Assembly: GCA_965112735.1 (NCBI GenBank)
Contig: OZ218958.1
Location: 2,604,001-2,668,000 of the forward strand
Length of the DNA stretch: 64,000 nt
Source of the DNA: Phaeosaccion multiseriatum
Taxonomy: Eukaryota > Protista > Ochrophyta, other classes
Direction of reading: 5' to 3'
The notes below the pieces were generated by a model, which made no database searches, was not told where the DNA came from, and saw nothing but the letters and a program-made list of their open reading frames with translations. A program made the position numbers and the translations under genes. Shown in pieces: positions 8,321 to 51,185 of the stretch. Numbering within the stretch: position 1 is the first letter of the stretch; every line of letters begins with the position of its first letter.

Positions 8321-8352
<32 letters not shown>

Positions 8353-9549: not shown

Positions 9550-9587
<38 letters not shown>

Positions 9588-11179: not shown

Positions 11180-11221
<42 letters not shown>

Positions 11222-12004
11222 TTGGTGTGGGGAGCGGGTCAGCGGTGCGGTGCTGACGTTGACCGGGAGGGAGGCTGGTGGCACCTACATGTGGTGGCAC
11301 CTACATGTGGTGCAGGGACCGATCGAGCGAAGCAGTGGAATGGACATTCCCTTCCCCTCTCTCTCTGGAAGGCTCTCGGCCGGGGGGGGGGGTCGGATGA
11401 GACCCTTGGCGAGGGCGTTTTCTCGCTCGTTGTGTTATGTGGCTTTGTGTCGAAGTGTGGCAGGCGGCAGCCCCCTCTGCTGCTGGACGGGAAGCAAGAA
11501 ACGGGTGGTGCCGTGTCCGGTGGTGGCGGTCAGTGTGCTCGCTCAAGCGAAGGATCTCGACTCCACATGATATGGTTTCAATTTTTCACCTAAAATGAGA
11601 ACTGAAAACTGAAAACTGAAAACTGCACCCGAGGTGATCTGACGGTCGGGGCTCTCACTACGCACCTCGCCAGACATCTTACGTACGCCACATGTACGTA
11701 TGTATGCATGTACGTATGTATGTGTGCATGTGTATATGTCAGCTTATCGATCGGTCAAGCCGGGGTGGGTGGGTGGGTGGGTGGATGGGGAGAGAGGAGT
11801 GAGGGAGGGCGGGCGACCATTCTCCGCTGCACTCATACAACACACCCCAAGGAAATAACCAACACGCTCAAAAGTCATTATGTATCTATACTGTAGTGAT
11901 TTAGGAAAGGAGTTGCTAGGGCGGGCGGATGTGCACACCTTCTTCTCTTCCTTTCTCCTTCCTCTCTCTCGTAAGACACACCACTTCACACTGCGACGAA
12001 CCCT

Positions 12005-26925: not shown

Positions 26926-29900
26926 ATGGGAAATGAGAGCAGTGGACTGAGTGGCACGGCCCATGCCGTGGACGACACAGTGGGGCCCACGCTGATGAGC
27001 GTGGCGGGCTTTGGCGAACGTTCGAATGCCGAGGGTGCCGCTGCTGGAAGTGGCGCTGAGGGAGCTTCAAGAAGCACAGCAGCTGGGAGCCAGAGCGACG
27101 CTGAGAAGAAGAAGGCGGCCGAGCGCGATCAGTCCGCTACCACTACTTCCAAAGCGGATGACGGCGGCGTGGACGATGTGATTGGCAACCTCGGAGGTAC
27201 CATCGCCGAGGGCGCGAGCAAGGTGGAGGAGCTCATCACCGGTGCGTCTTTTCTTGGGTGTTTCTGCGGCCCATGCCTGTGTGCAGTTAGAGTAGATGCT
27301 ATTATTTTGCTGTACATGTCCTTGCCTAGTTGCGGAGCTTTGTGATCTCCATCCCCTCTCCTACTTTCTTTGCGCTAAGATCCATCGGTGCAAAGATTCG
27401 CTTTCCCCCCTGTATTCAAAGATGAAGGGTTTCGTGGTGGCGGCAGCAGCAGCATGGCGCCGCCGCCGCAGAGGGGTGTCGGTGGCATTCGGTAGCAGTA
27501 GCAGTAGTGTGCGGTAGCAGGGGCGGGAAACAGCGAGGGAGCAGCGGAGGGCGAACAGTTTGGATACGTGGATATGGACCGGAAGGATGTAAGATACTCA
27601 TCCAGGCTTTACTCCGCCTCTATCCCCCCCTTCCCATCTCCGCTTCCAATGACCCTCGCCCTTCTCCCGCCCTTTCCCTCCGCTCTCCCCCCCCCCTGCC
27701 CCGAAACAGACTTCTTCTTCACCTCGGACCGAGACAGCCAGAAGAGGAAGCAATCCACCGACTCGACCCGAGGCAGCGTCGAGCTCTCCAGCTCCGCGGC
27801 CTCGTCCCTCGACTCGCTGGGCGTGAGCATTGAGGATATCAAGGAGTACTTCGCTTGGTTCTTCGGCAGCGGCTCCGACGACGAGGCGGGAGGTGAGAGA
27901 GCGCTTCCGGGGGTGGTGGGGAGGAGGGGGAGGGGGAGGGGGAGGGGGAGGGGGAGGGGGAGGGGGAGTCATGGGAAGCCTTTCGGCTCAACGATGAGGG
28001 GTGTGGTGGGGCATTGAGAGTGGTGGTAATGAGGGGTGCGGAGGGTCATGTGTTGGTGTTGGTGATGATGTGGCAGGAGGCCTACGACACGAAACGGTTC
28101 GGAATAGTTATTTCGCCCCTCCTTTCCCCCACCACATTCGCTCACTCACTCACTCCTTCCCTCACTCACTCACTCACTCACTCACTCACTCACTCACTCA
28201 CCTGCTTGTACTCACGCGCGCGCCCTAACTCACTCATTACCTCCTCACTACCTCCCCTTACCCTACTGACGCACTCACTCACCACTCTACTCACTCACTC
28301 ACTCACTCATTCATTCACTCACTCACCTGATCTTACTCGCACTCACCCCCTCCTACCTCACTCATTCCGTCCTCACTACCTCCTGACCTTACTCAGTCCC
28401 TCACTCACTGACACCCTCGTTGACCTGACTCACCCACTCTCTCTCCCACTCACTTCCTATCTCCCTCACTCTCTCACTCTCTGACTCACTCACTCACTCA
28501 CTCACTCACTCACTCACTCACTCACTCACTCACTCACCTGCTGTCACTCACACTCACCCCTTACCCCGCTCATTCCTTCCACACCACCTCCCACTTGCTC
28601 GCTCACGCACTGACTCACTCGCTGACCTGACTCAGCCACTCACTCACCCACTCACTTGCTCTCCCTCCCTCACTTGCGCACTCACTCAACTCACTCAAGT
28701 CGCTCAACTCACCCCCCTACCCGCTCCCTCACCCTTCCCTGTTCCCTCCCTCCCTCCCTCCCTCCTTCTTATATCTCTCTCCACTCCCTTCACCACCATC
28801 TCTTCCCTCACCCTCAGGGTCCTTCCCGGGGTCCTTCTCGACTGGCAGCGGCTCCGGCAGCACCGGCACCGGCACGGGCACCAGCCCTGCCTCGAACGTC
28901 AAGATCGCCGCGCTTATGGACGTGGCGGGCTTCGACCCCAAGGCCAAGGCCTCGGACCCAAAGGCGGCTGAGCAGAACTTCCTCACCTTCCTCAACGGCT
29001 TGGACGACTCAACCCTCCAGGCGGGGGTGCAGAAGGTAGAGGCCAGCGTACCTTCTACCTCCGCTACCACCGACAAGGGCGCTCTTTCCGACGCTGCTGC
29101 CTCGTCCCTCGACTCGCTGGGCGTGAGCATTGAGGATATCAAGGAGTACTTCGCTTGGTTCTTCGGCAGCGGCTCCGACGACCAGGCGGGAGGTGAGAGA
29201 GAGCGCGTGTGTTGCGGGGGGGTGGGACAGGAGAGGGCAGGGGGAGGGGCAGGGGGAGGGGGAGGGGGAGGGGGAGGGGGAGGGGTAGGGGCGGAGAGAT
29301 GGGCGGTTGAAAGGGAGGGCTCAGACTGAACTCACTCTGTCAGTCACTCATTCACCCATTCAGTCCAATCACTCACCTGATTGTAAACTCAACGTTCGCT
29401 CATCCCTTCCTTACTAAACCTCTTGCCCTACAGACTTGCTCGCTCACTGACCCATTTATCACTGACTCATTCGTAGACTCACTGACTCATTCACTGCCTC
29501 ACTCACTTGCCGGCCTCATTTACATTCCCTCCCTCACTTACTACGAACGCACTCACCCACTCTCTTTCTCTCTCCCTTACTGACTCAACTCTCCCTCTCC
29601 CTCACTCAACTCGCCCACCCACGTTTGACCACCCTCGCTCACACACGTTTTCACACATCCCGTCGCCCTCTCCCATCTCCTGAATAACAGGTCCTTCGGC
29701 CTCCTTCACCGGTCCTTCGGCCTCCTTCACCGGTTCCTCGGGCTCCTTCACCGGTCCCTCGGGCTCCATCTCGACTGGCAGCGGCTCCGGCAGCACCGGC
29801 AGCGGCAGCGGCACCAGCCCTGCCTCGAACGTCAAGATCGCCGCTCTCATGGACGTGGCGGGCTTCGACCCCAAGGCCAAGGCCTCAGACCCAAAGGCGG

Positions 29901-32900
29901 CTGAGCTGAACTTCGTCAACTTCCTCAACGGCTTGGACGAATCCACCCTCCAGGCGGGTGTGCAGAAGGTCGAGGCCAGCGTGCCCTCGGCCTCCCTCTC
30001 GGGCACCCCCGCCAAAACGGGATCGGGCGACACGCCATTCCACACCCCCGCTGGGGACGACACCGACGGCGCCATGGCGGGTGTTGCAGGTGGGCTGGCA
30101 GCGGCCGGAGCAGCAGCCGGAGCGGCCATTGGAGGTGCGCGTGTGTATCAAAAGGTTTTGGGCCGCGTGTGTGCGTGTGTGTGTGTATGTGGGTCTAGGG
30201 TTTGCGGGAGGAGACTCTGAAAGATTGGCCCAAAGTGGACTCTCTCCACCTGGAGTCAGGCAGCTTGCTTAGGGCAAGATAGGAGGAGGAGGATTGTGGG
30301 TTGAAGGGGGGGGGGGGGACTTACATCAACGTGTAGTAAGGTCCACAACCTCTTCGAACATGGTATTGTTTGAGTGCTGTCTTGCTTTTGCGCGTCCGAA
30401 AGGCTCGTCTCGAATCCTTCTCTGGGAGGAAATCCTGTTGGGTGAGCACCATTACTTCCCTCTTTTCCTTTGTGCCTCCTGCTCCCTACCCCTCTCCCCC
30501 CTCTTCTTGTTGTCAGCCCATTAACCTCTTTTTTCTCCTCTTGTGCTCTCTTGCAACTTTGGGACTGCTCGTCCGTTGCTCTGCTACCTTCCCTCATCTT
30601 CGCTTCGCTCCTCGTCACACAGTGAACAGCAGTGCGGAGAAGGACAAGGACGGCAAGAAGAAGAACGACAAATTCCTCTGGGGTGAGTGTCGTGTCTGAC
30701 TTGTCTTACGCGTGTGTGGTGTGATTGTGTTTGACCTCTTGCAGATTTGGACTGTGTGTGAGTCTGTACTACTCTTGTGAAACTGTACAGACTGGCCGCG
30801 CTGCCGGTACCGTATCTTACACTCCCTTCCAACGCGACTCCTGCGTGGTTTGAATGCCAAAGAGTGTGTGGAAAGGTTCGCTCATATCCCTCATCGGCAC
30901 TGCCATGCTTTTTTGTTACTTTACTCACTCACTCCTCAGGCATATTCGGAGGAGGAGACGACAACTCTACCCCCGCAACTGGCGACGCTACCACCGCCGC
31001 CACTGGAGGAGGAGCTGGAGAAGGAGGAATGGGCGCCTCTCTCTCCGGCGCGGCTGACGACCTGTCAGCAAAGGCCGAGGATGCATCTGATGCGATCGGT
31101 GCCAAGATTGACGAGACACAGGGCATGTTCTCCGATAGCACTGGCACTGGAGCAGCAGGCACTGAGGCAGGAACCGGAGCAGGAACCGGAGAAGGAGGAA
31201 TGGGCGCCTCTCTCTCTAGTGCTGCTGACGACCTCTCAGCCAAGGCCGAAGAAGCATCTGATGCGATCGGTGCCAAGATTGACGAGACACAGGGCATGTT
31301 CTCCGATAGCACTGGCACTGGAGCAGCAGACACGGGAGCAGGAGTGGGTGGATCCCTCTCTGGCACGGCTGAAGACCCCTCAGTCAGCGCCGGAGGGGCT
31401 TCTTCCGGCCTCGGTGGCCCGGACGCAGGAGGAGCTGGCGAGACCGGTGCCGGTGATGACGGTCTTGGAGACAAGGCCATGGCGGGTGTTGCGGGTGGAC
31501 TGGCAGCAGCAGGCACGGCACTTGGAGGTGTGTATCAATGGTCTCTTGAGCCCCCCCCCCCCCTGTTCACAGTGGCGCCTTTGTGGGGAGAGTGTGAGAG
31601 TGGTCATGGTGTCAAACTTGATGATTGGGGAGTGAAAAAGGCGGATACAATGCGTGCGAGTACCCGTCAACTGCCGCTCTTGTTGGCACGACCCTCTCTT
31701 TCCGTCCCGTCTACTCTCCTGCACCGTTCTGGGACTCATTGTCTACCCTGCCTATATGCCTCTATGCCTCTGTTCACCCCCCTCCCCCTATCCTCTGTAT
31801 GCATCTACCTCCCCATCTCCCCCACCCTTCTGCACCTTTTGCCTCCTTATTTCACCGCAGTGAGCGAGGCCAAGTCCAAGAAGAAGAAGAAGAAGGGCAT
31901 GTTCAAGGGTGAGTACAGCCACTTTTGTCGGCTCGCAAACTGCTGCTGTAGTCCTGTTCACTCAACTCATGGGTGTATATATGGGGTTGCGGTGCGCCAG
32001 CTTGAGACACCCCATTTTGGGGAATTGGGGGGGGGGGGGGCGGTTACATGATCGAGTAGTTCGGTTGCCTGAAAGAGCGATACGAGTGTTACGTGCATCA
32101 GGGTCATAGAGTGGTGTCGTTTGTCTTCCTCTCATGCCCCTTTCTTAACTCTGTTGCGTGCTGTTTTATCACCCCCTATCACCCTCTTTCCTTTGTGCCT
32201 TCTCAGGCATTTTCGGCTCGAGCAAGAAGGACCTGAACGCAGATGCCTCTGTGGACACCCCTGCTGCCTCTGTTGATGCGAGTGGCAGCGTGCCGGAGAT
32301 TGGCAGCGCTTCGCTTCCCTCGGGTGGTGTGAGCGCTGATGGCTCGCTTCCCTCTGGTGGCCTGAGCGTGGACGGCTCTCTTCCCTCGGGAGAGCTCCCC
32401 TCGGGTAGCCTGGACGTGAACGCCCCCAAGCTGGACGGCAGCATGCCTAGCGTGGACGGCTCGCTTCCCTCGGGTGGCGTTAACGCGGATGGCTCTCTTC
32501 CCTCGGGAGAGCTGCCCTCGGGTAGCGTGGACGTGAATGCGCCCAAGCTGGACGGCAGCATGCCTAGCGTTGACGGCTCTCTTCCCTCGGGTGGTGTGAG
32601 CGCTGATGGACTCTCTCTTCCCTCCGGAGAGCTCCCCTCGGGTAGCGTGGACGTGAATGCCACCAGCATCTCTGCGGACGGCAGCATGCCAGACGGATCA
32701 CTTTCCTCTGGTGGCCTGAACGTGGACGGCTCTCTTCCCTCTGGAGAGCTCCCCTCGGGTAGCGTGGATGTGAATGCCCCCAAGCTGGACGGCAGCATGC
32801 CTACCGTGGACGGCTCGCTTCCCTCGGGTGGCGTTAACGCGGATGGCTCTCTTCCCTCGGGAGAGCTCCCCTCTGCCAGCTTGGATGGCAAGGACCCCAA

Positions 32901-35900
32901 GGCCTCTGGCGACATGTCGGGAGCTATGGCGGGTGTGGCGGGAGGGCTCGCGGCAGCTGGAGTCGCAGTCGGAGGTGAGAACGAAGAAGACGGATGAGTT
33001 GGATGGTGGTGGATGGGGAGGGGAGGGGTTGAGGATGGCAGTGGATGAGGGGAGGGCATGGCAGAGGTGAGGTCAGACGGGAGGAGAGGACAGGACAGGA
33101 CAGGGGGAGGACTCACGGAGAGAAAAAAAGTGGGGGAGAGAAGAGAAGAGGAGAGAAGAATAAAAATGATTGTCTAATGCTTGTCTTGTTCTCCTCAACT
33201 GTGCAGCGAGCGGCACGGACGGCGGCAAGAAGGCCAAGAAGAAGGGCAAGAAGATGTTCAAGGGTGAGTGAGTATGCGCGCCGTGTCTCATATTGCCTTA
33301 CTCTCTGAAGAGCTGCAATGCAAGAGCTGCAAACGTGGCCTGATCTCGTCCTTGTTCTCACGTCACATTGCCTTCTCTGCACCCTTTCTGCACTCTTTAG
33401 GCATGTTCGGCTCCAGCACGAAGAAGCTGAAGGTTCCTGACGCCGATGCCTCTGTGGACGCGCCTGACGCCTCTGTGGACGTCAACGCGCCTTCGCTTTC
33501 CGGCGTGGGCGTGGATGGCTCTCTTCCTTCCGGAGAGCTCCCCGCTGCCAGCCTGGACGTGAATGCGCCCAAGCTGGACGGCAGCATGCCTAGCGTGGAC
33601 GGCTCGCTTCCCTCGGGTGGTCTGAACGTGGATGGCTCCCTTCCCTCTGGAGAGCTCCCCTCGGGTAGCCTGGATGTGAATGCCCCCAAGCTGGACGGCA
33701 GCATGCCTAGCGTGGACGGCTCGCTTCCCTCGGGTGGTCTGAACGTGGACGGCTCCCTTCCCTCGGGAGAGCTCCCCTCGGGTAGCCTGGATGTGAATGC
33801 CCCCAAGCTGGACGGCAGCATGCCTAGCGTGGACGGCTCGCTTCCCTCTGGTGGCGTGAACGTGGATGGCTCTCTCCCCTCGGGAGAGCTCCCCTCTGCC
33901 AGCCTGGACGTGAATGCCCCCAAGCTGGACGGCAGCATGCCTAGCGTGGACGGCTCGCTTCCCTCTGGTGGTCTGAACGTGGATGGCTCTCTTCCCTCTG
34001 GAGAGCTCCCCTCGGGTAGCCTGGATGTGAATGCCCCCAAGCTGGACGGCAGCATGCCTAGCGTGGACGGCTCGCTTCCCTCGGGTGGCCTGAACGTGGA
34101 TGGCTCTCTGCCCTCGGGAGAGCTCCCCTCGGGTAGTGTGGATGTGAATGCCCCTAAGCTGGACGGCAGCATGCCTAGTGTGGACGGCTCGCTTCCCTCG
34201 GGTGGCCTGAACGTGGATGGCTCTCTTCCCTCGGGAGAGCTCCCGTCGGGTAGCTTGGATGTGAATGCCCCCAAGCTGGACGGCAGCATGCCTAGTGTGG
34301 ACGGCTCGCTTCCCTCTGGTGGCCTGAACGTGGATGGCTCTCTTCCCTCTGGAGAGCTCCCCTCGGGTAGCCTGGACGTGAATGCCCCCAAGCTGGACGG
34401 CAGCATGCCTAGCGTGGACGGCTCGCTTCCCTCGGGTGGTCTGAACGTGGATGGCTCTCTTCCCTCGGGAGAGCTCCCCTCGGGTAGTGTGGACGTGAAT
34501 GCCCCCAAGCTCTCTGTGGACGGCAGCATGCCTAGCGTGGACGGCTCGCTTCCCTCTGGTGGCGTGAACGTGGATGGCTCTCTTCCCTCTGGAGAGCTCC
34601 CCTCGGGTAGCCTGGACGTGAATGCGCCCAAGCTGGACGGCAGCATGCCTAGCGTGGACGGCTCGCTTCCCTCTGGTGACGTGAACGTGGATGGCTCGCT
34701 TCCCTCGGGAGAGCTGCCCTCTGCCAGCCTGGACGTGAATGCGCCCAAGCTGGACGGCAGCATGCCTAGCGTGGACGGATCTCTTCCCTCTGGTAGCGTG
34801 AACGTCGATGGCTCTCTTCCCTCTGCCAGCTTGGATGGCAAGGACCCCAAGGCCTCTGGCGACATGTCGGGAGCTGTGGCGGGTGTGGCGGGAGGGCTGG
34901 CTGCAGCTGGAGTCGCGGTCGGAGGTGAGGCAAATGTCCCTCTGATCGTTTCCCTCTTTCCGGAGTGCCCTGATTTTTGCCATTCTGACTGTGTATTGCC
35001 TTTCTGCATCTCCTTAATTGTGCAGCGAGCGGCACGGACGCTGGCAAGAAGGCCAAGAAGAAGGGCAAGGGCATGTTCAAGGGTGAGTGGGTGCGCACTG
35101 TCTCATATTGCCTTACTCTCTGAAGGGCTGCAATGCAAGAGCTGCACACCTGCCCTGATGTATGTATTGCTTGGTCTCACTTCGCAGTGCCTTCTTTGCA
35201 CCGTTTCTGCACTCCTTAGGCATGTTCGGCTCAAGCACGAAGAAGCTGAAGGTTCCTGAGGCCGATGCCTCTGTGGACGCGCCTGACGCCTCTGTGGACG
35301 CCAACGCGCCTTCGCTTTCCGGCGTGGGCGTGGATGGCTCTCTTCCCTCGGGAGAGCTCCCCTCTGCCAGCCTGGACGTGAACGCCCCCAAGCTGGACGG
35401 CAGCATGCCTAGCGTGGACGGCTCTCTTCCCTCGGGTGGCTTGAACGTGGATGGCTCCCTCCCCTCGGGAGAGCTCCCCTCGGGTAGCCTGGACGTGAAT
35501 GCGCCCAAGCTGGACGGCAGCATGCCTAGCGTGGACGGCTCGCTTCCCTCGGGTGGCGTGAACGTGGATGGCTCCCTCCCCTCTGGAGAGCTCCCCTCGG
35601 GTAGCCTGGATGTGAATGCCCCCAAGCTGGACGGCAGCATGCCTAGCGTGGACGGCTCGCTTCCCTCGGGTGGCGTGAACGTGGATGGCTCCCTTCCCTC
35701 TGGAGAGCTCCCCTCTGCCAGCCTGGACGTGAACGCCCCCAAGCTGGACGGCAGCATGCCTAGCGTGGACGGCTCTCTTCCCTCGGGTGGCTTGAACGTG
35801 GATGGCTCCCTCCCCTCGGGAGAGCTCCCCTCGGGTAGCCTGGACGTGAATGCGCCCAAGCTGGACGGCAGCATGCCTAGCGTGGACGGCTCGCTTCCCT

Positions 35901-38900
35901 CGGGTGGTCTGAACGTGGATGGCTCGCTTCCCTCTGGAGAGATCCCCTCGGGTAGCCTGGACGTGAATGCGCCCAAGCTGGACGGCAGCTTGCCTGATGT
36001 TGACGGCTCGCTTCCCTCTGGTGGCCTGAACGTGGATGGCTCGCTTCCCTCTGGAGAGCTGCCCTCGGGTAGCCTGGACGTGGATGCCCCCAAGCTCTCT
36101 GTGGACGGCAGCATGCCTAGCGTGGACGGCTCGCTTCCCTCTGGTGGCCTGAACATGGATGGCTCTCTTCCCTCTGGAGACCTCCCCTCGGGTAGCCTGG
36201 ACGTGAATGCGCCCAAGCTGGACGGCAGCATGCCGAACGTTGACGGCTCGCTTCCCTCGGGTGACGTGAACGTGGATGGCTCGCTTCCCTCGGGAGAGCT
36301 GCCCTCTGCCAGCCTGGACGTGAATGCGCCCAAGCTGGACGGCAGCATGCCTAGCGTGGACGGATCTCTTCCCTCTGGTAGCGTGAACGTGGATGGCTCT
36401 CTTCCCTCTGCCAGCTTGGATGGCAAGGACCCCAAGGCCTCTGGCGACATGTCGGGAGCTGTGGCGGGTGTGGCGGGAGGGCTGGCTGCAGCTGGAGTGG
36501 CGGTCGGAGGTGAGGCAAATGTCCCTCTGATCGTTTCCCTCTTTCCGGAGTGCCTTGATTTTTGCCATTCTGACTGTGTATTGCCTTTCTGCATGTCCTT
36601 AATTGTGCAGCGAGCGGCACGGACGCCGGCAAGAAGGCCAAGAAGAAGGGCAAGGGCATGTTCAAGGGTGAGTGGGTGCGCACTGTCTCATGTTGCCTTA
36701 CTCTCTGAAGGGCTGCAATGCAAGAGCTGCACACCTGCCCTGATGTATGTATTGCTTGGTCTCACTTCGCAGTGCCTTCTTTGCACCGTTTCTGCACTCC
36801 TTAGGCATGTTCGGCTCAAGCACGAAGAAGCTGAAGGTTCCTGAGGCCGATGCCTCTGTGGACGCGCCTGACGCCTCTGTGGACGTCAACGCGCCTTCGC
36901 TTTCCGGCGTGGGCGTGGATGGCTCTCTTCCCTCGGGAGAGCTCCCCTCTGCCAGCCTGGACGTGAATGCCCCCAAGCTGGACGGCAGCATGCCTAGCGT
37001 GGACGGATCGCTTCCCTCGGGAGAGCTGAACGTGGATGGCTCCCTTCCCTCTGGAGAGCTGCCCTCTGCCAGCCTGGATGTGAATGCGCCCAAGCTGGAC
37101 GGCAGCATGCCTAGCGTGGACGGCTCGCTTCCCTCGGGTGGCGTGAACGTGGATGGCTCGCTTCCTTCGGGAGAGCTCCCCTCGGGTAGCCTGGACGTGA
37201 ATGCCCCCAAGCTGGACGGCAGCATGCCTAGCGTGGACGGCTCGCTTGCCTCGGGTGGCTTGAACGTGGATGGCTCGCTGCCCTCGGGTGGCGTGAACGT
37301 GGATGGCTCTCTTCCCTCGGGAGAGCTCCCGTCGGGTAGCCTCGACGTGGATGCCCCCAAGCTCTCTGTGGACGGCAGCATGCCTAGCGTGGACGGCTCT
37401 CTTCCCTCGGGGGGCGTGAACGTCGATGGGTCTCTTCCCTCGGGAGAGCTCCCCTCTGCCAGCCTGGACGTGAATGCCCCCAAGCTGGACGGCAGCATGC
37501 CTAGCGTGGACGGATCGCTTCCCTCGGGTGGCGTGAACGTGGATGGCTCTCTTCCCTCTGGAGAGCTCCCCTCTGCCAGCCTGGACGTGAATGCGCCCAA
37601 GCTGGACGGCAGCATGCCTAGCGTGGACGGATCGCTTCCCTCTGGTGGTCTGAACGTGGATGGCTCGCTTCCCTCTGGAGAGCTCCCCTCGGGTAGCCTG
37701 GACGTGAATGCCCCAAAGCTGGACGGCAGCATGCCTAGCGTGGACGGCTCGCTTCCCTCGGGAGAGCTGAACGTGGATGGCTCCCTTCCCTCGGGAGAGC
37801 TCCCCTCGGGCAGCGTGGACGGGAAGGACCCCAAGGTCTCTGGCGACATGACGGCCGCTATGGCGGGTGTAGCGGGAGGGCTGACGGCAGCTGGAGTGGC
37901 GGTCGGAGGTGAGAGCGAAGGCCCTTGTCAACGTGGATGGGGATGGGAGAATGGCAGTGGATGGTGGCGGGAGGGGTCGAGAGGGGGGGACGAGGGAAGG
38001 GTAAAGAAGTGGAGATGAGGAGGGGAGAAGAGGAGGAAAGTTTGGCCGAGGGAGGGGAGGAGAAAAGGAGAGGGGGAGAGAAGAGGAGTCGAGAGGACAC
38101 GGCAGGACAAGAGAGTAGAGGTGAAGAGCTTTCCTTCTCGCCGTTCTGACTTTGTATGTGCTTTGTGCTTGTTTTTGTTCTCCTTAACTTTGCAGTGAGC
38201 GGCACGGACGGCGGCAAGAAGGCCAAGAAGAAGGGCAAGGGCATGTTCAAGGGTGAGTGGGTGCGCACTGTCTCTTATTGCCTTACTCTCTGAGGAGCTG
38301 CAATGCAAGAGCTGCACACCTACCCTGATGTATGTATTGCTTGTTCTCACGTCACATTGCCTTTTTGCACCCTTTCTGCACTCTTTAGGCATGTTCGGCT
38401 CCAGCACGAAGAAGCTGAAGGTTCCTGAGGCCGATGCCTCTGTGGACGCGCCTGACGCCTCTGTGGACGTCAACGCGCCTGACGCCTCTGTGGACGTCAA
38501 CGCGCCTTCGCTTTCCGGCGTGGGCGTGGATGGCTCTCTTCCCTCCGGAGAACTCCCCTCTGCCAGCCTGGACGTGAATGCCCCCAAGCTGGACGGCAGC
38601 ATGCCGGACGTTGACGGCTCGCTTCCCTCGGGTGGCCTGAATGTGGACGGCTCTCTTCCCTCGGGAGAGCTCCCCTCGGGTAGCCTGGACGTGAACACCC
38701 CCAAGCTGGAAGGCAGCATGCCTAGCGTGGACGGCTCGCTTCCCTCGGGTGGCGTGAATGTGGATGGGTCTCTTCCCTCTGGAGAGCTGCCCTCTGCCAG
38801 CCTGGACGTGAATGCCCCCAAGCTGGACGGCAGCATGCCTAGCGTGGACGGATCGCTTCCCTCGGGAGAGCTGAACGTGGACGGCTCCCTTCCCTCGGGA

Positions 38901-41900
38901 GAGCTCCCCTCGGGTAGCCTGGATGTGAATGCCCCCAAGCTGGACGTCAGCATGCCTAGTGTGGACGGCTCGCTTCCCTCGGGTGAGCTGAACGTGGATG
39001 GCTCTCTTCCCTCGGGAGAGCTGCCCTCCGGTAGCGTGGATGTGAATGCCCCCAAGCTGGACGCAGATGGGGACGGCGAGCTCTCCCTCGGACAGAAGGT
39101 GGCGGCGGGTGTGGCTGGACTGGGTGTCGCTGGAGCCGCAGCGCTCTCCTTCGGCGGAAAGGGCGACAAGCCTAGCGTGGACGTGGATGGCTCTCTCCCC
39201 TCGGGTAGCCTGGACGTGAATGCCCCCAAGCTGGACGGCAGCATGCCTGATGTTGACGGCTCGCTTCCCTCGGGTGGCGTGAACGTGGACGGCTCGCTTC
39301 CCTCTGGAGAGCTCCCCTCGGGTAGCCTGGACGTGAATGCCCCCAAGCTGGACGGCAGCATGCCTGATGTTGACGGCTCTCTTCCCTCTGGAGAGCTCCC
39401 CTCTGCCAGCCTGGATGTGAATGCCCCCAAGCTGGACGGCAGCATGCCTAGCGTGGACGGCTCGCTTCCCTCGGGTGGTGTGAACGTGGACGGCTCGCTT
39501 CCCTCGGGGGAGCTGCCCTCGGGTAGCCTGGACGTGAATGCCCCCAAGGTGGACGGCAGCATGCCGAACGTTGACGGCTCGCTTCCCTCGGGTGGCGTGG
39601 ACGTGGACGGCTCTCTTCCCTCGGCAGAGCTCCCCTCGGGTAGTGTGGATGGGAAGGACCCCAAGCTCTCTGGCGACATGAAGGCCGCTATGGCGGGTGT
39701 AGCGGGAGGGCTGACGGCAGCTGGAGTGGCGGTCGGAGGTGAGAGCGAAGGTCCTTGTCAACGTTAGGCATTGTAATGACGTGCCTTCCTTTATCGCTCC
39801 ATTACCCTTTCTTCTAACTTCTGTGCGTTGCTTGCTTCTTCTGTTCTCTCCAGTGAGCGGCACAGACGGCGGCAAGAAGGGCAAGAAGAAGGGCAAGGGC
39901 ATGTTCAAGGGTGAGTGCGGGCGCCTTGTCTCAAGTTCTCACACTTCTCTATTGAAGAGGTGTAATGCGAGAGCTGCTTACCTTTGTGCGGATGTGGAAG
40001 TAATGTGCCTTTGGTCTCACGTCGGAGCGTTGCCTTATGGTGCCCCATTTCGTTTGCACCGTTTCTGCACTCCTCAGGCATGTTCGGCTCAAGCACGAAG
40101 AAGCTGAAGGTTCCTGAGGCGGATGCCTCTGTGGACGCCCCTGACGCCTCTGTGGACGTCAGCATGCCTGACGTTGATGGCTCACTTCCCTCGGCTGGTC
40201 TGAACGTGGATGGCTCGCTTCCCTCGGGAGAGCTCCCCTCGGGTAGCGTGGATGTCAATGCGCCCAAGCTGGACGGCAGCATGCCTGATGTTGACGGCTC
40301 GCTTCCCTCCGGTGGCGTGAACGTGGATGGCTCTCTTCCCTCTGGAGAGCTCCCCTCGGGTAGCCTGGACGTGAACGCCCCCAAGCTGGACGGCAGCATG
40401 CCTAGCGTGGACGGCTCGCTTCCCTCGGGTGGCTTGAATGTGGATGGCTCCATCCCCTCGGGTAGCCTGGACGTGAATGCGCCCAAGCTGGACGGCAGCA
40501 TGCCTAGCGTGGACGGCTCGCTTCCCTCGGGTGACGTGAACGTGGATGGCTCGCTTCCCTCTGGAGAGCTCCCCTCGGGTAGCCTGGATGTGAATGCCCC
40601 CAAGCTGGACGGCAGCATGCCTAGCGTGGACGGATCGCTTCCCTCGGGTGACGTGAACGTGGATGGCTCGCTTCCCTCTGGAGAGCTCCCCTCTGCCAGC
40701 CTGGATGTGAATGCGCCCAAGCTTGACGGCAGCATGCCTAGCGTGGACGGATCGCTTCCCTCGGGAGAGCTGAACGTGGATGGCTCTCTTCCCTCGGGAG
40801 AGCTCCCCTCGGGCAGCGTGGACGGGAAGGACCCCAAGCTCTCTGGCGACATGAAGGCCGCTATGGCGGGTGTAGCGGGAGGGCTGACGGCAGCTGGAGT
40901 GGCACTTGGAGGTGCGTACGAAGGTTCAGTCTGTCATTTACCTTTCCGGTTCGCCATTGGGCTTTTGACTGCGAACTGAGTGTCCTGAATGCACAGCGTT
41001 TGTAGGGAATCATGTGGGCGTAAAGCTGATGGCTTCCTTCTTTCCCTCCTGCGTTTCTGACCTCTTTCCTCTCTCTCTCCTCTCTTTCGTACTGTAGTGA
41101 GCGGCGACGCTGACGCGCCCTCTGTGGAAGTTCCCAAGAAGGAGAGCACGGGATTCTTCGGAGGTGAGGAGGGCAGAGGCATCGAAGTGGAGTTTTGTCT
41201 TGTGGATGCCAAGATGGCTGATGTATCACGCTCGATGTCGCGCATTTTCTCTCTCTGCTCGATGGATCTGCTTGGGTCGCTCGGATTCTTATCTCTTCTC
41301 GTTGATGCTCCTCTCGTCTGTGCTCCACTCCACAGGTCTGTTCGGAGGCAAGAAGGACACCAAGGTCCCGGATGCCTCTGTGGACGTGGACGCTCCCAAG
41401 CTCTCTGTGGACGGCAGCATGCCTGAGGTTGACGGCTCGCTCCCCTCAGGTACCCTCGACGTGGATGCCCCCAAGCTCTCTGTGGACGGCAGCATGCCTA
41501 GCGTGGATGGCTCGCTTCCCTCGGGTGGCGTGAACGTGGACGGCTCCCTTCCCTCTGGAGAGCTCCCCTCTGCCAGCCTGGATGTGAATGCGCCCAAGCT
41601 GGACGGCAGCATGCCTAGCGTGGACGGCTCGCTTCCCTCGGGTGGCCTGAACGTGGATGGCTCGCTTCCTTCGGGAGAGCTCCCCTCGGGCAGCGTGGAC
41701 GTGAATGCGCCCAAGCTGGACGGCAGCATGCCTGATGTTGACGGCTCGCTTCCCTCGGGTGGCCTGAACGTGGATGGCTCGCTTCCCTCTGGAGAGCTCC
41801 CCTCGGGTAGCCTGGACGTGAATGCCCCCAAGCTGGACGGCAGCATGCCTAGCGTGGACGGCTCGCTTCCCTCGGGAGAGCTGAACGTGGATGGCTCCCT

Positions 41901-44900
41901 TCCCTCGGGAGAGCTCCCCTCGGGCAGCGTGGACGGGAAGGACCCCAAGCTCTCTGGCGACATGAAGGCCGCTATGGCGGGTGTAGCAGGAGGGCTGACG
42001 GCAGCTGGAGTGGCACTTGGAGGTGCGTACGAAGGTTCAGTCTTTCATTTACCTTTCCGGTTCGCCATTGGGCTTTTGACTGCGAACTGGGTGTCCTGAA
42101 TGCACAGCGTTTGTAGGGAATCATGTGGGCGGAAGAGCTGAGCTTCCCTCTTTCCCTCCTGCGTTTCTGACCTCTTTCCTCTCTCTCTCCCCTCTTTCGC
42201 ACTGCAGTGAGCGGCGACGCTGACGCGCCCTCTGTGGAAGTTCCCAAGAAGGAGAGCACGGGATTCTTCGGAGGTGAGGAGGGCAGAGGCATCGAAGTGG
42301 AGTTTTGTCTTGCGTGCCAAGGTGGCTGATGTATCACGCTCGAACTTTCACAGCTCGCTGCGATCGCGCATTTTCTCTCCCTCTGCTTGATGGTCTGCTT
42401 GGGTCGCCCGGTTTCTTATCTCTTCTCGTTGATGCTCCTCTCGTCTGTGCTCCACTCCACAGGTCTGTTCGGAGGGAAGAAGGACACCAAGGTCCCGGAT
42501 GCCTCTGTGGACGTGGACGCTCCCAAGCTCTCTGTGGACGGCAGCATGCCTGAGGTTGACGGCTCGCTCCCCTCAGGTACCCTCGACGTGGATGCCCCCA
42601 AGCTCTCTGTGGACGGCAGCATGCCTAGCGTAGATGGCTCGCTTCCCTCTGGTGGGCTGAACGTGGACGGCTCTCTTCCCTCTGGAGAGCTCCCCTCGGG
42701 TAGCCTGGATGTGAATGCGCCCAAGCTGGACGGCAGCATGCCTGATGTTGACGGCTCGCTTCCCTCGGGCGGCCTGAATGTTGATGGACTCTCTCTTCCC
42801 TCGGGAGAGCTCCCCTCGGGTAGCCTGGACGTGAACGCCCCCAAGCTGGACGGCAGCATGCCTAGCGTGGACGGCTCGCTTCCCTCGGGTGGCCTGAACG
42901 TGGATGGCTCTCTTCCCTCTGGAGAGCTCCCCTCGGGTAGTGTGGATGTGAATGCCCCCAAGCTGGACGGCAGCATGCCTAGCGTGGACGGCTCGCTTCC
43001 CTCGGGCGGCCTGAACGTTGATGGACTCTCTATTCCCTCGGGAGAGCTCCCCTCGGGTAGCCTGGATGTGAATGCCCCCAAGCTGGACGGCAGCATGCCT
43101 GATGTTGACGGCTCGCTTCCCTCGGGTGGCCTGAACGTGGATGGCTCCCTTCCCTCGGGAGAGCTCCCCTCGGGTAGCGTGGACGTGAATGCGCCCAAGC
43201 TGGACGGCAGCATGCCTAGCGTGGACGGCTCGCTTCCCTCGGGTAGCCTTAACGTCGATGGCTCCCTTCCCTCGGGAGAGCTGCCCTCGGGTAGCGTGGA
43301 CGTGAATGCCCCCAAGCTGGACGCTGACGGGGACGGCAAGCTCTCGCTTGGACAGAAGGTGGCGGCGGGTGTGGCTGGACTGGGTGCCGCTGGAGCCGCA
43401 GCGCTCTCCTTCGGCGGAAAGGGCGACAAGCCTAGCGTGGACGTGGATGGCTCTCTCCCCTCGGGTAGCCTGGACGTGAATGCCCCCAAGCTGGACGGCA
43501 GCATGCCTGATGTTGACGGCTCTCTTCCCTCGGGCGGCGTGAACGTGGATGGCTCTCTTCCCTCTGGAGAGCTGCCCTCGGGTAGCCTGGACGTGAATGC
43601 CCCCAAGCTGGACGGCAGCATGCCTGATGTTGACGGCTCTCTTCCCTCGGGTGGCCTGAATGTGGACGGCTCTCTTCCCTCTGGGGAGCTGCCCTCGGGT
43701 AGCGTCGACGTGAATGCCCCCAAGCTGGACGGCAGCATGCCTGATGTTGACGGCTCGCTTCCCTCTGGTAGCCTGAACGTGGATGGCTCCCTTCCCTCGG
43801 GAGAGCTGCCCTCGGGTAGCCTGGACGTGAATGCCCCCAAGCTGGACGGCAGCATGCCTAGCGTGGACGGATCGCTTCCCTCTGGTGGCCTTAACGTGGA
43901 TGGCTCCCTTCCCTCGGGAGAGCTGCCCTCGGGTAGCGTGGACGTGAATGCCCCCAAGCTGGACGCTGACGGGGACGGCAAGCTCTCGCTTGGACAGAAG
44001 GTCGCGGCGGGTGTGGCTGGACTGGGTGCCGCTGGAGCCGCAGCGCTCTCCTTCGGCGGAAAGGGCGACAAGCCTAGCGTGGACGTGGATGGTTCTCTCC
44101 CCTCGGGTAGCTTGGACGTGAATGCCCCCAAGCTGGACGGCAGCATGCCTGATGTTGACGGCTCGCTTCCCTCGGGTGGCGTGAACGTGGACGGCTCTCT
44201 TCCCTCGGGAGAGCTCCCCTCGGGTAGCCTGGATGTGAATGCCCCCAAGCTGGACGGCAGCATGCCTGATGTTGACGGCTCGCTTCCCTCGGGTAGCCTG
44301 AACGTGGATGGCTCTCTTCCCTCGGGAGAGCTGCCCTCGGGTAGCCTGGACGTGAATGCCCCCAAGCTGGACGGCAGCATGCCCAGCGTGGACGGATCGC
44401 TTCCCTCTGGTAGCCTGAACGTGGATGGCTCCCTTCCCTCGGGAGAGCTGCCCTCGGGTAGCGTGGACGTGAATGCCCCCAAGCTGGATGCTGACGGGGA
44501 CGGCAAGCTCTCGCTTGGACAGAAGGTGGCGGCGGGTGTGGCTGGACTGGGTGCCGCTGGAGCCGCAGCGCTCTCCTTCGGCGGAAAGGGCGACAAGCCT
44601 AGCGTGGACGTGGATGGCTCTCTCCCCTCGGGTAGCCTGGACGTGAATGCCCCCAAGCTGGACGGCAGCATGCCTGATGTTGACGGCTCTCTTCCCTCGG
44701 GTGGCGTGAACGTGGATGGCTCCCTTCCCTCGGGAGAGCTGCCCTCGGGTAGCCTGGATGTGAATGCCCCCAAGCTGGACGGCAGCATGCCTAGCGTGGA
44801 CGGCTCGCTTCCCTCTGGTAGCCTGAACGTGGATGGCTCTCTTCCCTCGGGAGAGCTGCCCTCGGGTAGCGTGGACGTGAATGCCCCCAAGCTGGACGCT

Positions 44901-46292
44901 GACGGGGACGGCAAGCTCTCGCTTGGACAGAAGGTCGCGGCGGGTGTGGCTGGACTGGGTGCCGCTGGAGCCGCAGCGCTCTCCTTCGGCGGAAAGGGCG
45001 ACAAGCCTAGCGTGGACGTGGATGGCTCTCTCCCCTCGGGTAGCTTGGACGTGAATGCCCCCAAGCTGGACGGCAGCATGCCTGATGTTGACGGCTCTCT
45101 TCCCTCGGGTGGCGTGAACGTGGACGGCTCTCTTCCCTCGGGAGAGCTCCCCTCGGGTAGCCTGGACGTGAATGCCCCCAAGCTGGACGGCAGCATGCCT
45201 AGCGTGGACGGCTCGCTTCCCTCGGGTGGCCTGAATGTGGACGGCTCTCTTCCCTCGGGAGAGCTCCCCTCGGGTAGCCTGGATGTGAATGCCCCCAAGC
45301 TCTCCGCGGACGGCAGCATGCCTAGCGTGGACGGCTCGCTTCCCTCGGGTGACGTGAACGTGGATGGCTCCCTCCCCTCGGGAGAGCTCCCCTCGGGTAG
45401 CGTCGACGTGAACGGTCCCAAGGTCTCTGGAGACGCTGAAGGGCCCTCTTTGGGGCAGAAGATCGGTGCGGGTGTGGCTGGACTGGGTGCCGCCGGAGCC
45501 GCAGCGCTCTCCCTTGGCGGAAAGGGCGACAAGGATCACAGCTTGAGCGGGCCCAATGTAAGTGGGCCCAACGTGTCCACACCCGGCGGTAGCGTCAGCG
45601 GCTTTGGGCCCAACGTGAGCGCAAAGATCGATGCCATCACCAAAAAGTTCCATCCAGAGAAACAGACGCATACGGGCTTCGGTCCCGACGTCGGTATGGA
45701 GCACCCGGCATTCGGTGGGCAGCACTCAGCCCTAGACAAGCCTGGCTACAGTGGGTTCGGGTCTTCTTCGGGCTCCGTGCCTTCGGGCTCTGTTCCCTCG
45801 GGAAGCGTCAAGGCAAGCGTGAAGAAGCCTGCTGTCGGTGGGCACTCAGCCCTAGACACCCCCATGGGCACTCTCCCCTCGGGAAGCATCACTGGACCTA
45901 CCTTGACTCGGCCGGACGGAAGCATCGACACGCCCTCAGGGGATATCTCCGGACCCAGTGTCACCGGGCCGGAAGGCAGCATGGAGACGCCCTCAGTGGG
46001 TCTTCCCAATGTCACCGGCCCCGACGGACGTATCCAGAGTCCTTCCGTGTCTGTCAGCGGCCCCAATGTCGACGGGAAGTACACGGCTCCTTCCGGCTCT
46101 GTGAGTGGGCCCTCTGCAACAGTGTCTGACGTGAAGTATGGAGCAAGTGGCGGCAAGCTGTCTGCCTCTGGTGGTGGCGGTAACGTGGATCTCAAGCCGA
46201 CGACAGGCCATGTAGTCCTGGAGGGACAGCCTCAGCAGACGGCATGCTGCTCTACAGGTCGCTGCAGCTTCAGGGGTTGTGTGATCATGTAA
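26926..46292 (+). CDS. Giant AHNAK/periaxin-like repeat protein, ~4,605 aa, 22 exons; predicted N-myristoylated and C-terminally prenylated (CVIM)
   Basis: Exons 26926-27241, 27710-27892, 28818-29192, 29691-30134, 30623-30682, 30940-31527, 31861-31908, 32207-32974, 33207-33263, 33401-34924, 35026-35082, 35220-36509, 36611-36667, 36805-37908, 38196-38252, 38389-39738, 39854-39910, 40078-40911, 41098-41163, 41336-42022, 42208-42273, 42463-46292. All boundaries GT-AG, all internal exons multiples of 3, total 13,818 nt. Starts MGNESS, ends CCSTGRCSFRGCVIM*. Confidence 0.82.
28140..28730 (+). repeat. Degenerate (CTCA)n microsatellite in intron 2 of the giant gene (similar tract at 29330-29610 in intron 3)
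   Basis: ctcactcactca runs; reverse complement of the (GAGT)n array. Confidence 0.9.
32290..45420 (+). repeat. Coding 117-bp (39-aa) tandem repeat arrays, roughly 70 units spread over 8 exons
   Basis: Unit LDVNAPKLDGSMPSVDGSLPSGGLNVDGSLPSGELPSGS; the 117-bp period is visible e.g. between 33664 and 33781. Variation is mostly synonymous or conservative. Copy number is estimated from exon lengths. Confidence 0.95.
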
Positions 46293-47902: not shown

Positions 47903-50900
47903 TTACATGATGACGCACTTGCAGCCCGTCTTCACGGCCTGCCCCGCTCCCTCCACCTGGTAAGAGCTCTGTGCCGGCCCCTCCGCCACCCTTCCCTGCA
48001 CCTCCTCTCCCGCCCGCCCCTGCTTGTCCCCGCTCCCCGCGGTACCACTCACAGGGGGAGGGGCCTTCATACCGGGGGAGCCTTGCAGCTCCGGCGATCT
48101 CGCCCCCGGAGAGACGAGGCCCGATGGAGATGACTCCTCTGCTGCCGCTGCCGCCGCTGCCGCCGCTGCTGCTGCTGTTGCTGCCGCCGCTGCTGCTGCT
48201 TCCGCCGCCGCTGCTGCTGCTTCCGCCGCCGCTGCTGCTGCTGCTTCTGCTTCAGCGTCAGCCTTGGCCTTTGCGTCTGCCGCGGCTTTGGCAACGGCGT
48301 CTTCTTCTTCCTTCCTCTTGGCCTCTGCCGCCGCCGCCGCTGCCTCAGCCTCTTCTGCTGCCTTCTTCGCAGCTGCCTCCGGATCCTCCCCTTGGGCCTT
48401 GGCGAGCGCCGCTGCGGGCATGGGAGGGAGAGCCAGGGGGGGAGGGGCGGCAGTCTCCTCTTCCTCCTCCGCTTCTGCCTCTACATCCTCTCCAGCAGCG
48501 GCCGCTTCTGCTGCCGCCGCCGCCGCCGCCTCGGCCTCCGCCTTCTTCTTTCGGGCAGCAAGCTTCTGTGCGAATTCAGTCGTGTGAATGCCCGGCAACG
48601 GCTTGAAGGTGGTCTGGACGTAGTTGTGAGGGAACCAGCCGCATGCACCGGATTTCTCTAGCTCACCCCACGACCATTGGTCCTCCTTGCGCAGCACTTT
48701 GATCTTGTCGCCGATCTGAAGGCGGTGTGCGGGAGGGGAGAGAGAGGGAGGGTAGGGGATAAGAGGCGGGTCAGCAGCGAAGAAGGGAGGAAGGAAGGGA
48801 GGAAGGGAGGGAGGCGGGGTGGGTGGGGGAGGAGACCAAACCGAACGGAATCATCCAGCCTTCACATGTGTGTCCATCACCTCCCTTCCCCTTGCCTGTA
48901 ACACACTCACACACACACACACACTCAAACACACACACGCACATACACACACACCCCCTCACACACACGCACACACGCACACACGCACCCCGAAACTGAG
49001 CTGCTCCAAGCTGGCGTCTCCCTTGAGAGGGTAAGAGGCCTCAATGGTGCTCCCCTCCTGAGCCTCGAGCGCGTAAGGGTCGTTGGCGTGCGCACGCTTG
49101 TCCGCCGCCTCTGCCTCTGCCTCGCTCGCCTCTTCGCCCGCCTTACCGCTGCTGCTGCCGTACTGCTTGGGGCGGAAGGGCGCCATCCCCCCTGCGTGGG
49201 CAAGGCGTGTGCGTGCGTGCGTGCGTGTGTGTGTGTGTGTGCGTGTGTGTGCGTGAGAGAGTGTGTGTGCGTGTGGGTGGGTGCGGAAGGAGCGGGTGAG
49301 CAAGTAACGGAGGCAACCAACCAATTCCCAATTCCCATCACTTTCACAAATGGCGTGGCGTGCAACCAACAGCTCCACCAGCACGGCCTAGAAAGCGAAG
49401 GAAAGGAAAGGATACAAGAGAGAAAGAAACGCCGCAGGCTCAAGACCAACAAACATGTGCTGAACAGCAGCAGCGGCAGTGTCTGTCCGTCCACCCTCCC
49501 ACGCTTGGGAAAAGATGCACGCTTTCTTGGTCACACTCACCTCCCATAATGGCTGTCATCCCCGTAGCCACAGCTCCTGCAGGTCGGTAGCTACTGGGCT
49601 TCTCTGGAGCAGCTCCATCACCGCCCGCCGCTCCTCCTCCTCCTGCCGCTGCTGCCGCGGCTGCTGTTGCTGCCTCCGCCTCTGCCTCGAGCTTTTCCTT
49701 CGCCGCTGCCACCCCTCCACTACTAGCAAAGACTCCGGATGCAGGAATGGGGGGAGGAGCTGCTGCTGCTGCTGGTGGTGGTGTTGCTGTGGTGGAGGTG
49801 GGAATAGGAGGGGGGCCTACCGAGGAAGAGGGGGGAGCTGCTGCTGCTGCTGTTGTTGCTGTAGAGCTGGGAATAGGAGGAGGAGACTGGGAGGCAGAAG
49901 GAGCCGTGACAGGGATGGGAGGAGGGGCTACGGCTGCTGTTGTTGTGGAGGAGGTCGGAATAGGGGGAGGAGACGCCGAGGAGACAGGAATGGGAGGAGG
50001 GTCAGAGGAAGAGGAAGAGCTGGGGATTGGAGGAGGACCCGTCTTGGGGGCCTCCGCCGATTCCGTCGATTCTGCCACCCCCTTCCCTGCTGCTGCTACT
50101 GCCGCTACTCCTTCAGCTGCTACTGCTGATGTTGCTGCTACTGCTCCTGCCCCTACCGCCCCCGCTGCTCCTGTCGCGGGTGCAGATTGCCCCTCCACAG
50201 CGTCTGTTCCTGCTGCTGCGATTGAGGCCGCTGCGTCAGAGGTGCCTCCGGCTGCTACTGAGAGCTTCTCCACGGCATCCGTTCCTGCTGCTGCGACTGC
50301 TGCTGTAGCACCAGAGCTGGCACCTGAGATGGCCCCTGCGATCTCTGCGGTGGCATCCGTGCTCACGCCTTCTATTGCTGCCTTCGCGTCCATGCTTGCT
50401 TCTTCTATTGCTGCCTTCGCGTCCGTGCTCGCTTCTGTGACTAATGCCTTTGCCTCGGTACTCGCTTCTGCTATCTCTGCCTTTGCGTCCGAGGTCGCTT
50501 CTGCGAGTGCTGCTGCTGGTGCTATCGGAGTCTCAACCTCTGGCAAGGCCGAGACGGACCCCACCCCTTCCTCAGAAGCACCTGAGGGCTCGGCTGAGGA
50601 TTGCCGAGGGGGCAAGGGCGGGGGTCCCCCCGCTGCGGCAGGGAAGGGCGCCTCTGCACTCTTCATACTGCCCGGCCTGCTCGTGGGCAAAGGAGGAGGA
50701 GTTGCCGCAGGTGCTTTGCCGGAGCCCTCCGCAGCGGCAGCAGGGAAGGGAGCTTCTGCACTCTTCATACTACCCGGTCTGCTGGTAGGCAGGGGAGGAG
50801 GAGCGACCGCAGGCGCCGGCGCCTCCACAGCGCCTTCAGCGGCGGCAGGGAAGGGCGCCTCTGCGGTCTTCATACTGCCCGGCCTGCTGGTGGGCAAGGG

Positions 50901-51185
50901 AGGAGGAGTGGGTGCCGTCGGCGCCTCCGCCGAGCCCTCAGCAGCAGCCTCATTTCCTACACTCTCACGAGGAGGAGTAGGAGGAGGACCCGCGCCTGGA
51001 GGTGCTGGAAGCTCCTGCTCTGCTAGAGAGGGAGGCTGGAGCGGCACAGGAGCGCCCCCAGCTTGGTCACCTCCTCCTCCTTCTGCTCCGGTTGCTGCTA
51101 CCGCTGCGGCAGTGGCGAGATCAGCGGCCTCGGCTTTCGGTACTTTGAAGCTCCCCTTACTGCTGCGCTTCTTCTTCCGTGCCAT
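47903..51185 (-). CDS. Proline-rich SH3-domain protein with polybasic N terminus and C-terminal CaaX (CKCVIM), ~886 aa, 3 exons
   Basis: Exons 51185-49541, 49191-48989, 48715-47903 (2661 nt). The SH3 domain is split by an intron: IEASYPLKGDASLEQLSFG|IGDKIKVLRKEDQWSWGELEKSGACGWFPHNYV. Many PPP[LI]P motifs; Ala/Glu/Lys coiled coil after the SH3. Confidence 0.85.

Follow-up and report, generated by a model that had tools for sequence, protein, structure and literature searches.

AHNAK, AHNAK2 and periaxin are giant proteins whose tandem repeats share a word pattern of the type hydrophobic-D-hydrophobic-x-x-P-K..G, with words of the form MPxVD. The repeat unit of AHNAK is 128 amino acids (aa) long, and the C-terminal region of the AHNAK family carries a nuclear localisation signal and a motif that binds S100A10/annexin A2. 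AHNAK2 and periaxin begin with a domain-swapped PDZ-like domain (PMC7072810, PMC8833689), and one study describes AHNAK as able to associate with membranes (PMC2196192). In the literature cited here, such giant scaffolds are treated in vertebrates only, and their repeat body has neither a solved structure nor an agreed mechanism. Here we describe a gene for a protein with repeats of this kind in an alga, Phaeosaccion multiseriatum. It lies in a window of 64,000 nucleotides (nt), which is the whole stretch of DNA analysed (contig OZ218958.1 of assembly GCA_965112735.1, positions 2,604,001 to 2,668,000 of the forward strand) and to which coordinates refer unless another contig is named.

An earlier note on this window, made from its sequence alone, had proposed a protein of ~4,600 aa encoded at 26926-46292, and the gene model presented below gives 4,605 aa in one open frame over 22 exons. 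The repeats of this protein are AHNAK-like, although it is not a bona fide member of the AHNAK family. Its motifs suggest a disordered polyanionic scaffold attached at many points to a membrane, on its cytosolic face, a tentative reading to which we would give slightly less than an even chance.

The gene and its coding evidence

The model was built by hand from the exon-intron junctions (Table 1) and has a coding sequence of 13,818 nt with no internal stop. All 21 introns are in phase 1, and every one of them starts with GT and ends with AG. As already remarked in the earlier note, open reading frame (ORF) callers break the gene into pieces, and the introns are the cause; the stop-to-stop frames of the + strand contain long repeat-bearing open frames that shift frame at regular points. 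With one exception among the 22, the exons have a G+C content at third codon positions (GC3) of 0.67-1.0, and the overall G+C content of the introns is 0.47-0.57. Tiny exons reach a GC3 of 0.9-1.0, exon 1 has a modest value (0.67), and exon 6 gives the weakest coding signal of the gene (0.50). Across the 46 repeat units of exactly 39 aa, the ratio of nonsynonymous to synonymous change (dN/dS) is 0.115 (pS 0.229, pN 0.031). The units are under purifying selection, and the array is coding DNA in the frame of the model and no satellite. Since silent sites have diverged while the protein sequence was held, the units must be old enough to have drifted silently.

The depth of k-mers in four public DNA contig sets is ~50-90 times higher in repeat bins (32250-32849) than in unique bins, which roughly agrees with the ~73 assembled units and with an array free of gross collapse. 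Between 33401 and 38252 the exon-intron modules are tandem copies, with intron lengths of 101 and 137 nt each found three times, and the gene has grown by duplication of whole cassettes, introns included. Most of intron 2 (28141-28697) is occupied by an imperfect (CTCA)n microsatellite of ~138 copies, whose translation gives runs of THSL in more than one frame and at which the read contigs break.

Table 1. Position of the gene and of its features in the window
Feature	Position	Strand	Remarks
Whole gene	26926-46292	+	22 exons, 21 GT-AG introns, 4,605 codons plus stop
Exon 1	26926-27241	+	First ATG after an in-frame stop; MGNESSG N-myristoylation pattern
Exons 2-4	27710-30134	+	Predicted helical head domain in two copies
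First basic micro-exon	30623-30682	+	VNSSAEKDKDGKKKNDKFLWG
Exon 6	30940-31527	+	Two acidic Ala/Gly-rich 57-aa units, then Gly/Ala segment at the end
Repeat body	32410-45422	+	~73 units, mostly 39 aa, consensus LDVNAPKLDGSMPSVDGSLPSGGLNVDGSLPSGELPSGS
Polybasic micro-exon	33207-33263	+	SGTDGGKKAKKKGKKMFKG
Polybasic micro-exon copies	31861-31908, 35026-35082, 36611-36667, 38196-38252, 39854-39910	+	
Less basic micro-exon variants	41098-41163, 42208-42273	+	
Gly/Ala segment, example	34870-34924	+	GAVAGVAGGLAAAGVAVG
Other Gly/Ala segments (starts)	30068, 31476, 32920, 36455, 37848, 39099, 39684, 40857, 41968, 43359, 44001, 44526, 44934, 45462	+	
DADGDG loops (approximate)	39060-39098, 43320-43358, 43962-44000, 44487-44525, 44895-44933	+	DxDxDG pattern
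Last exon	42463-46292	+	1,275 codons; repeats, five internal punctuations, tail
C-terminal tail	45519-46289	+	Degenerate GP-rich AHNAK-like units
C-terminal end	46245-46289	+	CCSTGRCSFRGCVIM; CaaX box CVIM and three upstream Cys

Acidic repeats and their likeness to AHNAK

The repeat body contains 73 repeat starts, 46 of the units being exactly 39 aa long, in line with the ~70 repeats of 39 aa counted previously, and Tandem Repeats Finder (TRF) reports a period of 117 nt with 82-94% match. The three words singled out in the earlier note all occur (MPDVD 15 times, VDVNAPKLDG 8 times), but GPKVSG is present only once and the commonest words are MPSVD (47) and LDVNAPKLDG (48). The net charge is about -320; Lys amounts to 4.9% and Arg is absent from the repeat body. 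Modelling of several units, which the same note had proposed, was carried out with AlphaFold2 (AF2) on five of them and yielded no fold (59-row alignment, predicted local distance difference test (pLDDT) 49.7, no secondary structure), and on this model the body is probably disordered. The protein has no match above cut-off in Pfam or NCBIfam, where weak matches to EF-hand, P311, DUF7553 and TamB were discarded as sub-threshold, and none in a sequence search of the PDB. Five DADGDG(K/E)LSLGQ loops, which fit the DxDxDG calcium-loop pattern, stand immediately upstream of internal Gly/Ala-rich hydrophobic segments. The loop DADGDGKLSLGQ scores 20.4 bits against Pfam EF-hand_5 (cut-off 25.9) and has Gln instead of Glu at position 12; together with the Asp-rich units, the five loops hint at Ca2+ binding.

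The comparison of the repeats with those of AHNAK bears out the likeness that had been proposed. With one module (exon 14, 367 aa) as query against 1.84 billion representative proteins, phmmer returned 358 matches, 95 of them below 1e-30, and the first 150 were listed. The top ones are giants of 3,000-7,500 aa, led by vertebrate AHNAK/AHNAK2 (E 5e-239); entries named AHNAK or AHNAK2 come from loach, shark, turtle, snake, marsupial, canid and bird, and of the 16 listed matches for which source names were obtained, eight are AHNAK/AHNAK2 entries and one is a PDZ-domain entry. Almost every protein among the 150 listed is AHNAK-like in composition; these are not random low-complexity proteins. Against these 150 proteins and one cluster member, the real query scored up to 723 bits, whereas ten queries with identically permuted units, the reversed query and ten full shuffles gave at most 15 bits; because these controls destroy residue order, it is on that order, and on neither composition nor periodicity, that the match depends.

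The alignment with loach AHNAK has 38% identity, pairing MPSVDGSLPSGG with MPSLDISLPKGG and PSGSLDVNAPKLDGS with PSGEINVEGPDIKGG. The best single stretch amounts to 74 bits over ~320 residues, that is ~9 bits per 39-aa unit, and the huge E-values are thus due to repetition. The tail also matches AHNAK-like proteins, with 34 bits per stretch and in their repeat-like parts only; a homologue search with the tail alone found just one fish AHNAK-like protein. No PDZ domain was found by Pfam at E<=1 on any N-terminal exon, as the earlier note had judged from the sequence, residues 1-640 match none of the AHNAK-type proteins found by phmmer, and neither a count of the AG-x-AG-G/L motif nor a scan for Gly/Ala segments revealed any such segment in an AHNAK-type match. 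Matches to a bacterial 'PxKF domain' with 51-58% identity were set aside as trivial (GSLPS)n runs; short words of the GSLPS kind turn up trivially in bacterial proteins that are unrelated.

These results bear on origin. Common descent rather than convergence, through an old eukaryotic repeat family or by gene transfer, is possible if somewhat doubtful, and would be compatible with a scaffold function. The AHNAK-like composition of nearly all listed matches, the identity to loach AHNAK, the matches of the tail and the existence of similar proteins in invertebrates and Mucoromycota all speak for it. However, the statistics are inflated by repetition, unit length (39 versus 128-165 aa), charge and non-repeat ends all differ, words of this kind recur easily, as is plain from the (GSLPS)n matches, and a bacterium with a similar design (see below) favours a recurring biophysical solution.

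Lipid motifs, Gly/Ala segments and proposed attachment to membranes

Both ends of the protein carry putative lipidation motifs, as had been noticed from the sequence. The N terminus, MGNESSG, matches the PROSITE N-myristoylation pattern G-{EDRKHPFYW}-x(2)-[STAGCN]-{P} and is close to MGNEAS, with which myristoylated calcineurin B begins; inspection by eye, with no predictor run, showed no hydrophobic core of a signal peptide there. At the other end, the last four residues before the stop are CVIM, the farnesylation box of K-Ras4B, with three further Cys within 11 residues. The protein has only 4 Cys in 4,605 residues, all of them within the last 15, and this absence from the first 4,590 residues combined with clustering at the very end is the strongest internal argument for the tail as a lipidation site. 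Myristoylation and CaaX processing both take place in the cytosol, and the motifs suggest lipidation at both ends.

Between the N terminus and the repeats lies a head domain that is present twice (residues 100-440, NVKIAALMDVAGFDPKAK...), for which AF2 predicts six helices (pLDDT 64.5, predicted template modelling score (pTM) 0.54). It has no relative by Pfam, among the AHNAK-type matches or, credibly, in the ESM Atlas, and Foldseek against the PDB gave nothing better than E 3.7. In exons 2 and 3 the domain closes with the aromatic motif IKEYFAWFFGSGSDD, whose EYFAWFFG takes the same module position as the Gly/Ala segments, the first of which closes exon 4.

The repeat body is broken, as the earlier note does not mention, by 9 micro-exons and by Gly/Ala-rich hydrophobic segments, 15 in all, which divide it into stretches of 136-527 residues. 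Nine of the 15 lie at the end of an exon and have a micro-exon after them, which is polybasic in 7 of the 9 cases (e.g. SGTDGGKKAKKKGKGMFKG), and the exon downstream then begins with MFGSSTKKLKVP. The other six are internal to exons and continue with SFGGKGDK or SLGGKGDK. In the last exon, four of the five punctuations read DADGDGKLSLGQKVAAGVAGLGAAGAAALSFGGKGDK and the fifth is a variant that lacks the DADGDG loop. The segments have a mean Kyte-Doolittle value of 1.4-1.7 over 19 residues and a summed Hessa scale of +2.9 to +4 kcal/mol, so they are only marginally hydrophobic, and several are just 16 residues long. The Lys/Phe patches that accompany them resemble the basic-aromatic membrane-binding segment of MARCKS. 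That the punctuation is functional is suggested by its retention in the proteins from Ectocarpus, Gongronella, a metagenome and a bacterial membrane described in the next section.

A mechanism can be proposed on these grounds. A single nuclear gene of a photosynthetic stramenopile would produce a cytosolic protein made of a duplicated helical head, an acidic body and a short tail. It would be anchored at its N terminus by a myristoyl group on Gly2 and at its C terminus by a farnesyl group attached to the CVIM Cys, aided by palmitate on the three nearby Cys. Internal anchors would be provided by the 15 Gly/Ala segments, most of them with a basic Phe-bearing patch such as KKAKKKGKGMFKGMFGSSTKK that could stick to acidic lipids. 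With 17 stitch points in all, the polyanionic stretches between segments would hang from the membrane as loops and form a cortical coat or scaffold, perhaps a Ca2+-binding one. Nothing found in the sequence analysis speaks for the bridging of two membranes, which the earlier note had also considered.

Several points weigh against this scaffold. The only public sequencing data found to cover the locus are four DNA-type contig sets from a single sample, in which introns are evenly covered and no splice joints occur, and a single full-length transcript is presumed from the gene model. The exon that encodes MGNESS, with its modest GC3, is the least certain part of this model and is confirmed by no relative; the Ectocarpus model begins with MPHGEE, and the Ectocarpus contig ends before the 3' end of the gene. 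Lipid motifs are short, and a CaaX end, which was found in none of the 150 listed matching proteins nor in the one cluster member, is shown in no relative. The segments are marginally hydrophobic and could serve self-association instead of membrane binding. Finally, the low pLDDT of the repeats may equally mean a failure of AF2.

The possibility of self-association leads to a picture in which the Gly/Ala segments act as elastin-, silk- or prion-like stickers and the acidic repeats as spacers, giving a gel, a condensate or an elastic network that the lipidated ends merely tether. We regard this as unlikely. The Gly, Ala, Val and Leu composition of the segments is akin to that of self-associating low-complexity segments in general, the repeats look disordered, and the segments are regularly spaced in all relatives, including proteins in which no terminal lipid motif is seen. 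By contrast, the basic Phe-bearing patch that follows most segments suits the binding of acidic lipids better, and a net charge of this size opposes self-association unless Ca2+ bridges the chains.

It is slightly more improbable that the locus yields no single protein of 4,605 aa but shorter isoforms obtained by skipping of cassettes, or separate products from internal starts. Given the uniform intron phase, the skipping of any internal exon would keep the frame, the locus is known from DNA contigs only, and its modules are tandem copies of recent origin whose introns are nearly identical. Nevertheless, the splice sites are all of one kind, nothing interrupts the frame, the units are under purifying selection, the modules are not set apart by a stop or a promoter-like break, and the sole Cys cluster lies at the far end. 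Slightly more doubtful again is a giant multi-pass protein with the Gly/Ala segments as true transmembrane helices and the acidic loops on alternating sides: the Kyte-Doolittle values come close to the classic threshold, most segments have basic residues after them, in keeping with the positive-inside rule, and the N-terminal membrane helix of the bacterial look-alike is real, but the summed Hessa values are unfavourable, no signal peptide is seen by eye, several segments have only those 16 residues, and 15 spans, an odd number, would put on opposite sides two ends whose lipidation is cytosolic in both cases. For the membrane-attached scaffold, shallow insertion aided by the Lys/Phe patches is accordingly favoured over spanning because of this marginal hydrophobicity and this odd number.

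Relatives, neighbouring genes and comparison with known systems

Punctuation here means Gly/Ala hydrophobic segments of 16-25 residues, each with a basic Gly/Phe patch after it. Proteins of this design appear to be few, and all are uncharacterised; the algal protein is no singleton. The earlier note had recognised no described family; the relatives are indeed unnamed, but proteins of the same architecture occur in Ectocarpus, a Mucoromycota fungus, a metagenome and a bacterium. In Ectocarpus fasciculatus, an unnamed protein (P0280, a partial model of 1,202 aa on the 12.8-kb contig CAXNAF020004263.1) has acidic VSVPDVS-type repeats, TSLTAGLAAGGVAAVGAIGAAVGLSGDKPD, a small exon with SVDVKKPKKGLFGGLFGSSKGKIEV, and then repeats anew, thus sharing with the Phaeosaccion protein the order of xVDxxAP-type acidic repeats, Gly/Ala segment, basic patch (KKPKKGLFGGLFGSSKGK) and repeats. 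In both genes each module is divided between one large and one small exon whose phases are symmetric, whereas the Ectocarpus introns are in phase 0 and displaced by 7-10 codons from those of the Phaeosaccion gene. The public gene model at 7000-12819 of this Ectocarpus contig retains intron sequence and stops at the contig end.

In Gongronella butleri (Mucoromycota), the alignment with the hypothetical protein KAI8066518.1 (P0139) runs through the punctuation, pairing GKLAGATAAFGAIGAAGAGAAAGLSGKLSGKGD with GKLSLGQKVAAGVAGLGAAGAAALSFGGKGD, and acidic repeats are again followed by a Gly/Ala segment, a basic patch (GKLSGKGD) and further repeats. Identity to the Ectocarpus and Gongronella proteins is 31-37% only. 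A metagenomic protein of unassigned origin (P0130) starts with MGNEQQAG and has DWNAPKLNTD repeats, a Gly/Ala segment and an FGSSKN motif, along with a faint MORN annotation (PF02493) at its C-terminal end. The algal protein has the design that these three share, namely acidic AP-containing repeats, Gly/Ala segments and basic Gly/Phe patches. An activated-sludge bacterial protein of 1,271 aa (P0111; metagenome contig L002, 6001-9816) follows the same design principle: besides an N-terminal membrane helix and a Pro-rich linker it has LPKVD repeats, as well as Gly/Ala segments with LFDKVKGAF after them; its gene adjoins an OmpA-family gene. AHNAK-named or AHNAK-like proteins were also found in an isopod (start MGNVESRP), Seison (MGNLLSRH), a trematode and Mucor, and a literature search returned no paper that connects AHNAK with algae or Mucor.

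As for the host, the left end of the window contains an importin-alpha exon for which the best named matches, with 52-54% identity, come from stramenopile algae, Choristocarpus and Tribonema among them. The host is an ochrophyte, and the databases contain no proteome close to it. Contamination by animal DNA is excluded by this neighbour and by the local GC content and intron style that are shared. Other ORFs of the contig resemble VPS53, a TypA/BipA GTPase and RNase T2, as judged by eye from their translations and not by a search. A convergent neighbour at 47903-51185 on the - strand encodes a Pro-rich protein with PPPLPTSRPGS and PPPIP repeats, a split SH3 domain, an Ala/Glu-rich region and a CaaX end with upstream Cys (KTGCKCVIM). 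Inverted duplication as the source of the shared CVIM was ruled out, the final 60 nt of the two genes being identical at 24 of 60 positions; from its sequence, the neighbour may be a membrane-anchored partner.

A broader proposal, which we consider unlikely, is that vertebrate AHNAK represents one PDZ-bearing branch of a much older and so far unrecognised class of membrane-stitched repeat scaffolds spread across eukaryotes, including stramenopile algae, Mucoromycota, invertebrates and other protists. If so, the algal form would have kept or invented a fully lipid-based attachment (myristoylated head, farnesylated and palmitoylated tail, 15 hydrophobic-basic stitches) and would be a tractable non-animal model for AHNAK-type repeats at membranes. 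Either the AHNAK family is far wider than animals or a repeat design for membrane coating has evolved repeatedly, and both outcomes inform on repeat function. The Phaeosaccion protein combines AHNAK-like repeats with a different and readily testable candidate mode of membrane attachment and has relatives in brown algae and fungi. Its gene is moreover an unusually clean case of a gene made of exon cassettes, every one of which can be skipped without a change of frame.

Compared with the known lipid-dependent anchors, those of K-Ras4B, MARCKS and calcineurin B are single anchors in small proteins, whereas the algal chain would have 15 internal patches over 4,605 aa, known as motifs only. With AHNAK, AHNAK2 and periaxin it shares giant size and the word pattern given above, its central tandem repeats being of the same sequence type as those of the AHNAK family. 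The algal repeats are without a confident AF2 fold, and the tail of periaxin is likewise predicted to be disordered (PMC7072810). Differences are as clear. The N-terminal PDZ-like domain of the AHNAK family is missing from the algal protein, whose unit of 39 aa contrasts with one of ~165 aa in AHNAK2 (PMC8833689). AHNAK is polyampholytic, with 12-14% Lys (9-15% in the listed phmmer matches), whereas the algal protein is polyanionic and poor in Lys; the algal gene, unlike that of AHNAK, has 22 exons and encodes myristoylation and CaaX motifs at its ends. It is the absence of PDZ and the differences in Lys content and unit length that argue against membership in the AHNAK family. The algal protein would nevertheless work in a mode like that of AHNAK, as a giant membrane-associated repeat scaffold, without being AHNAK.

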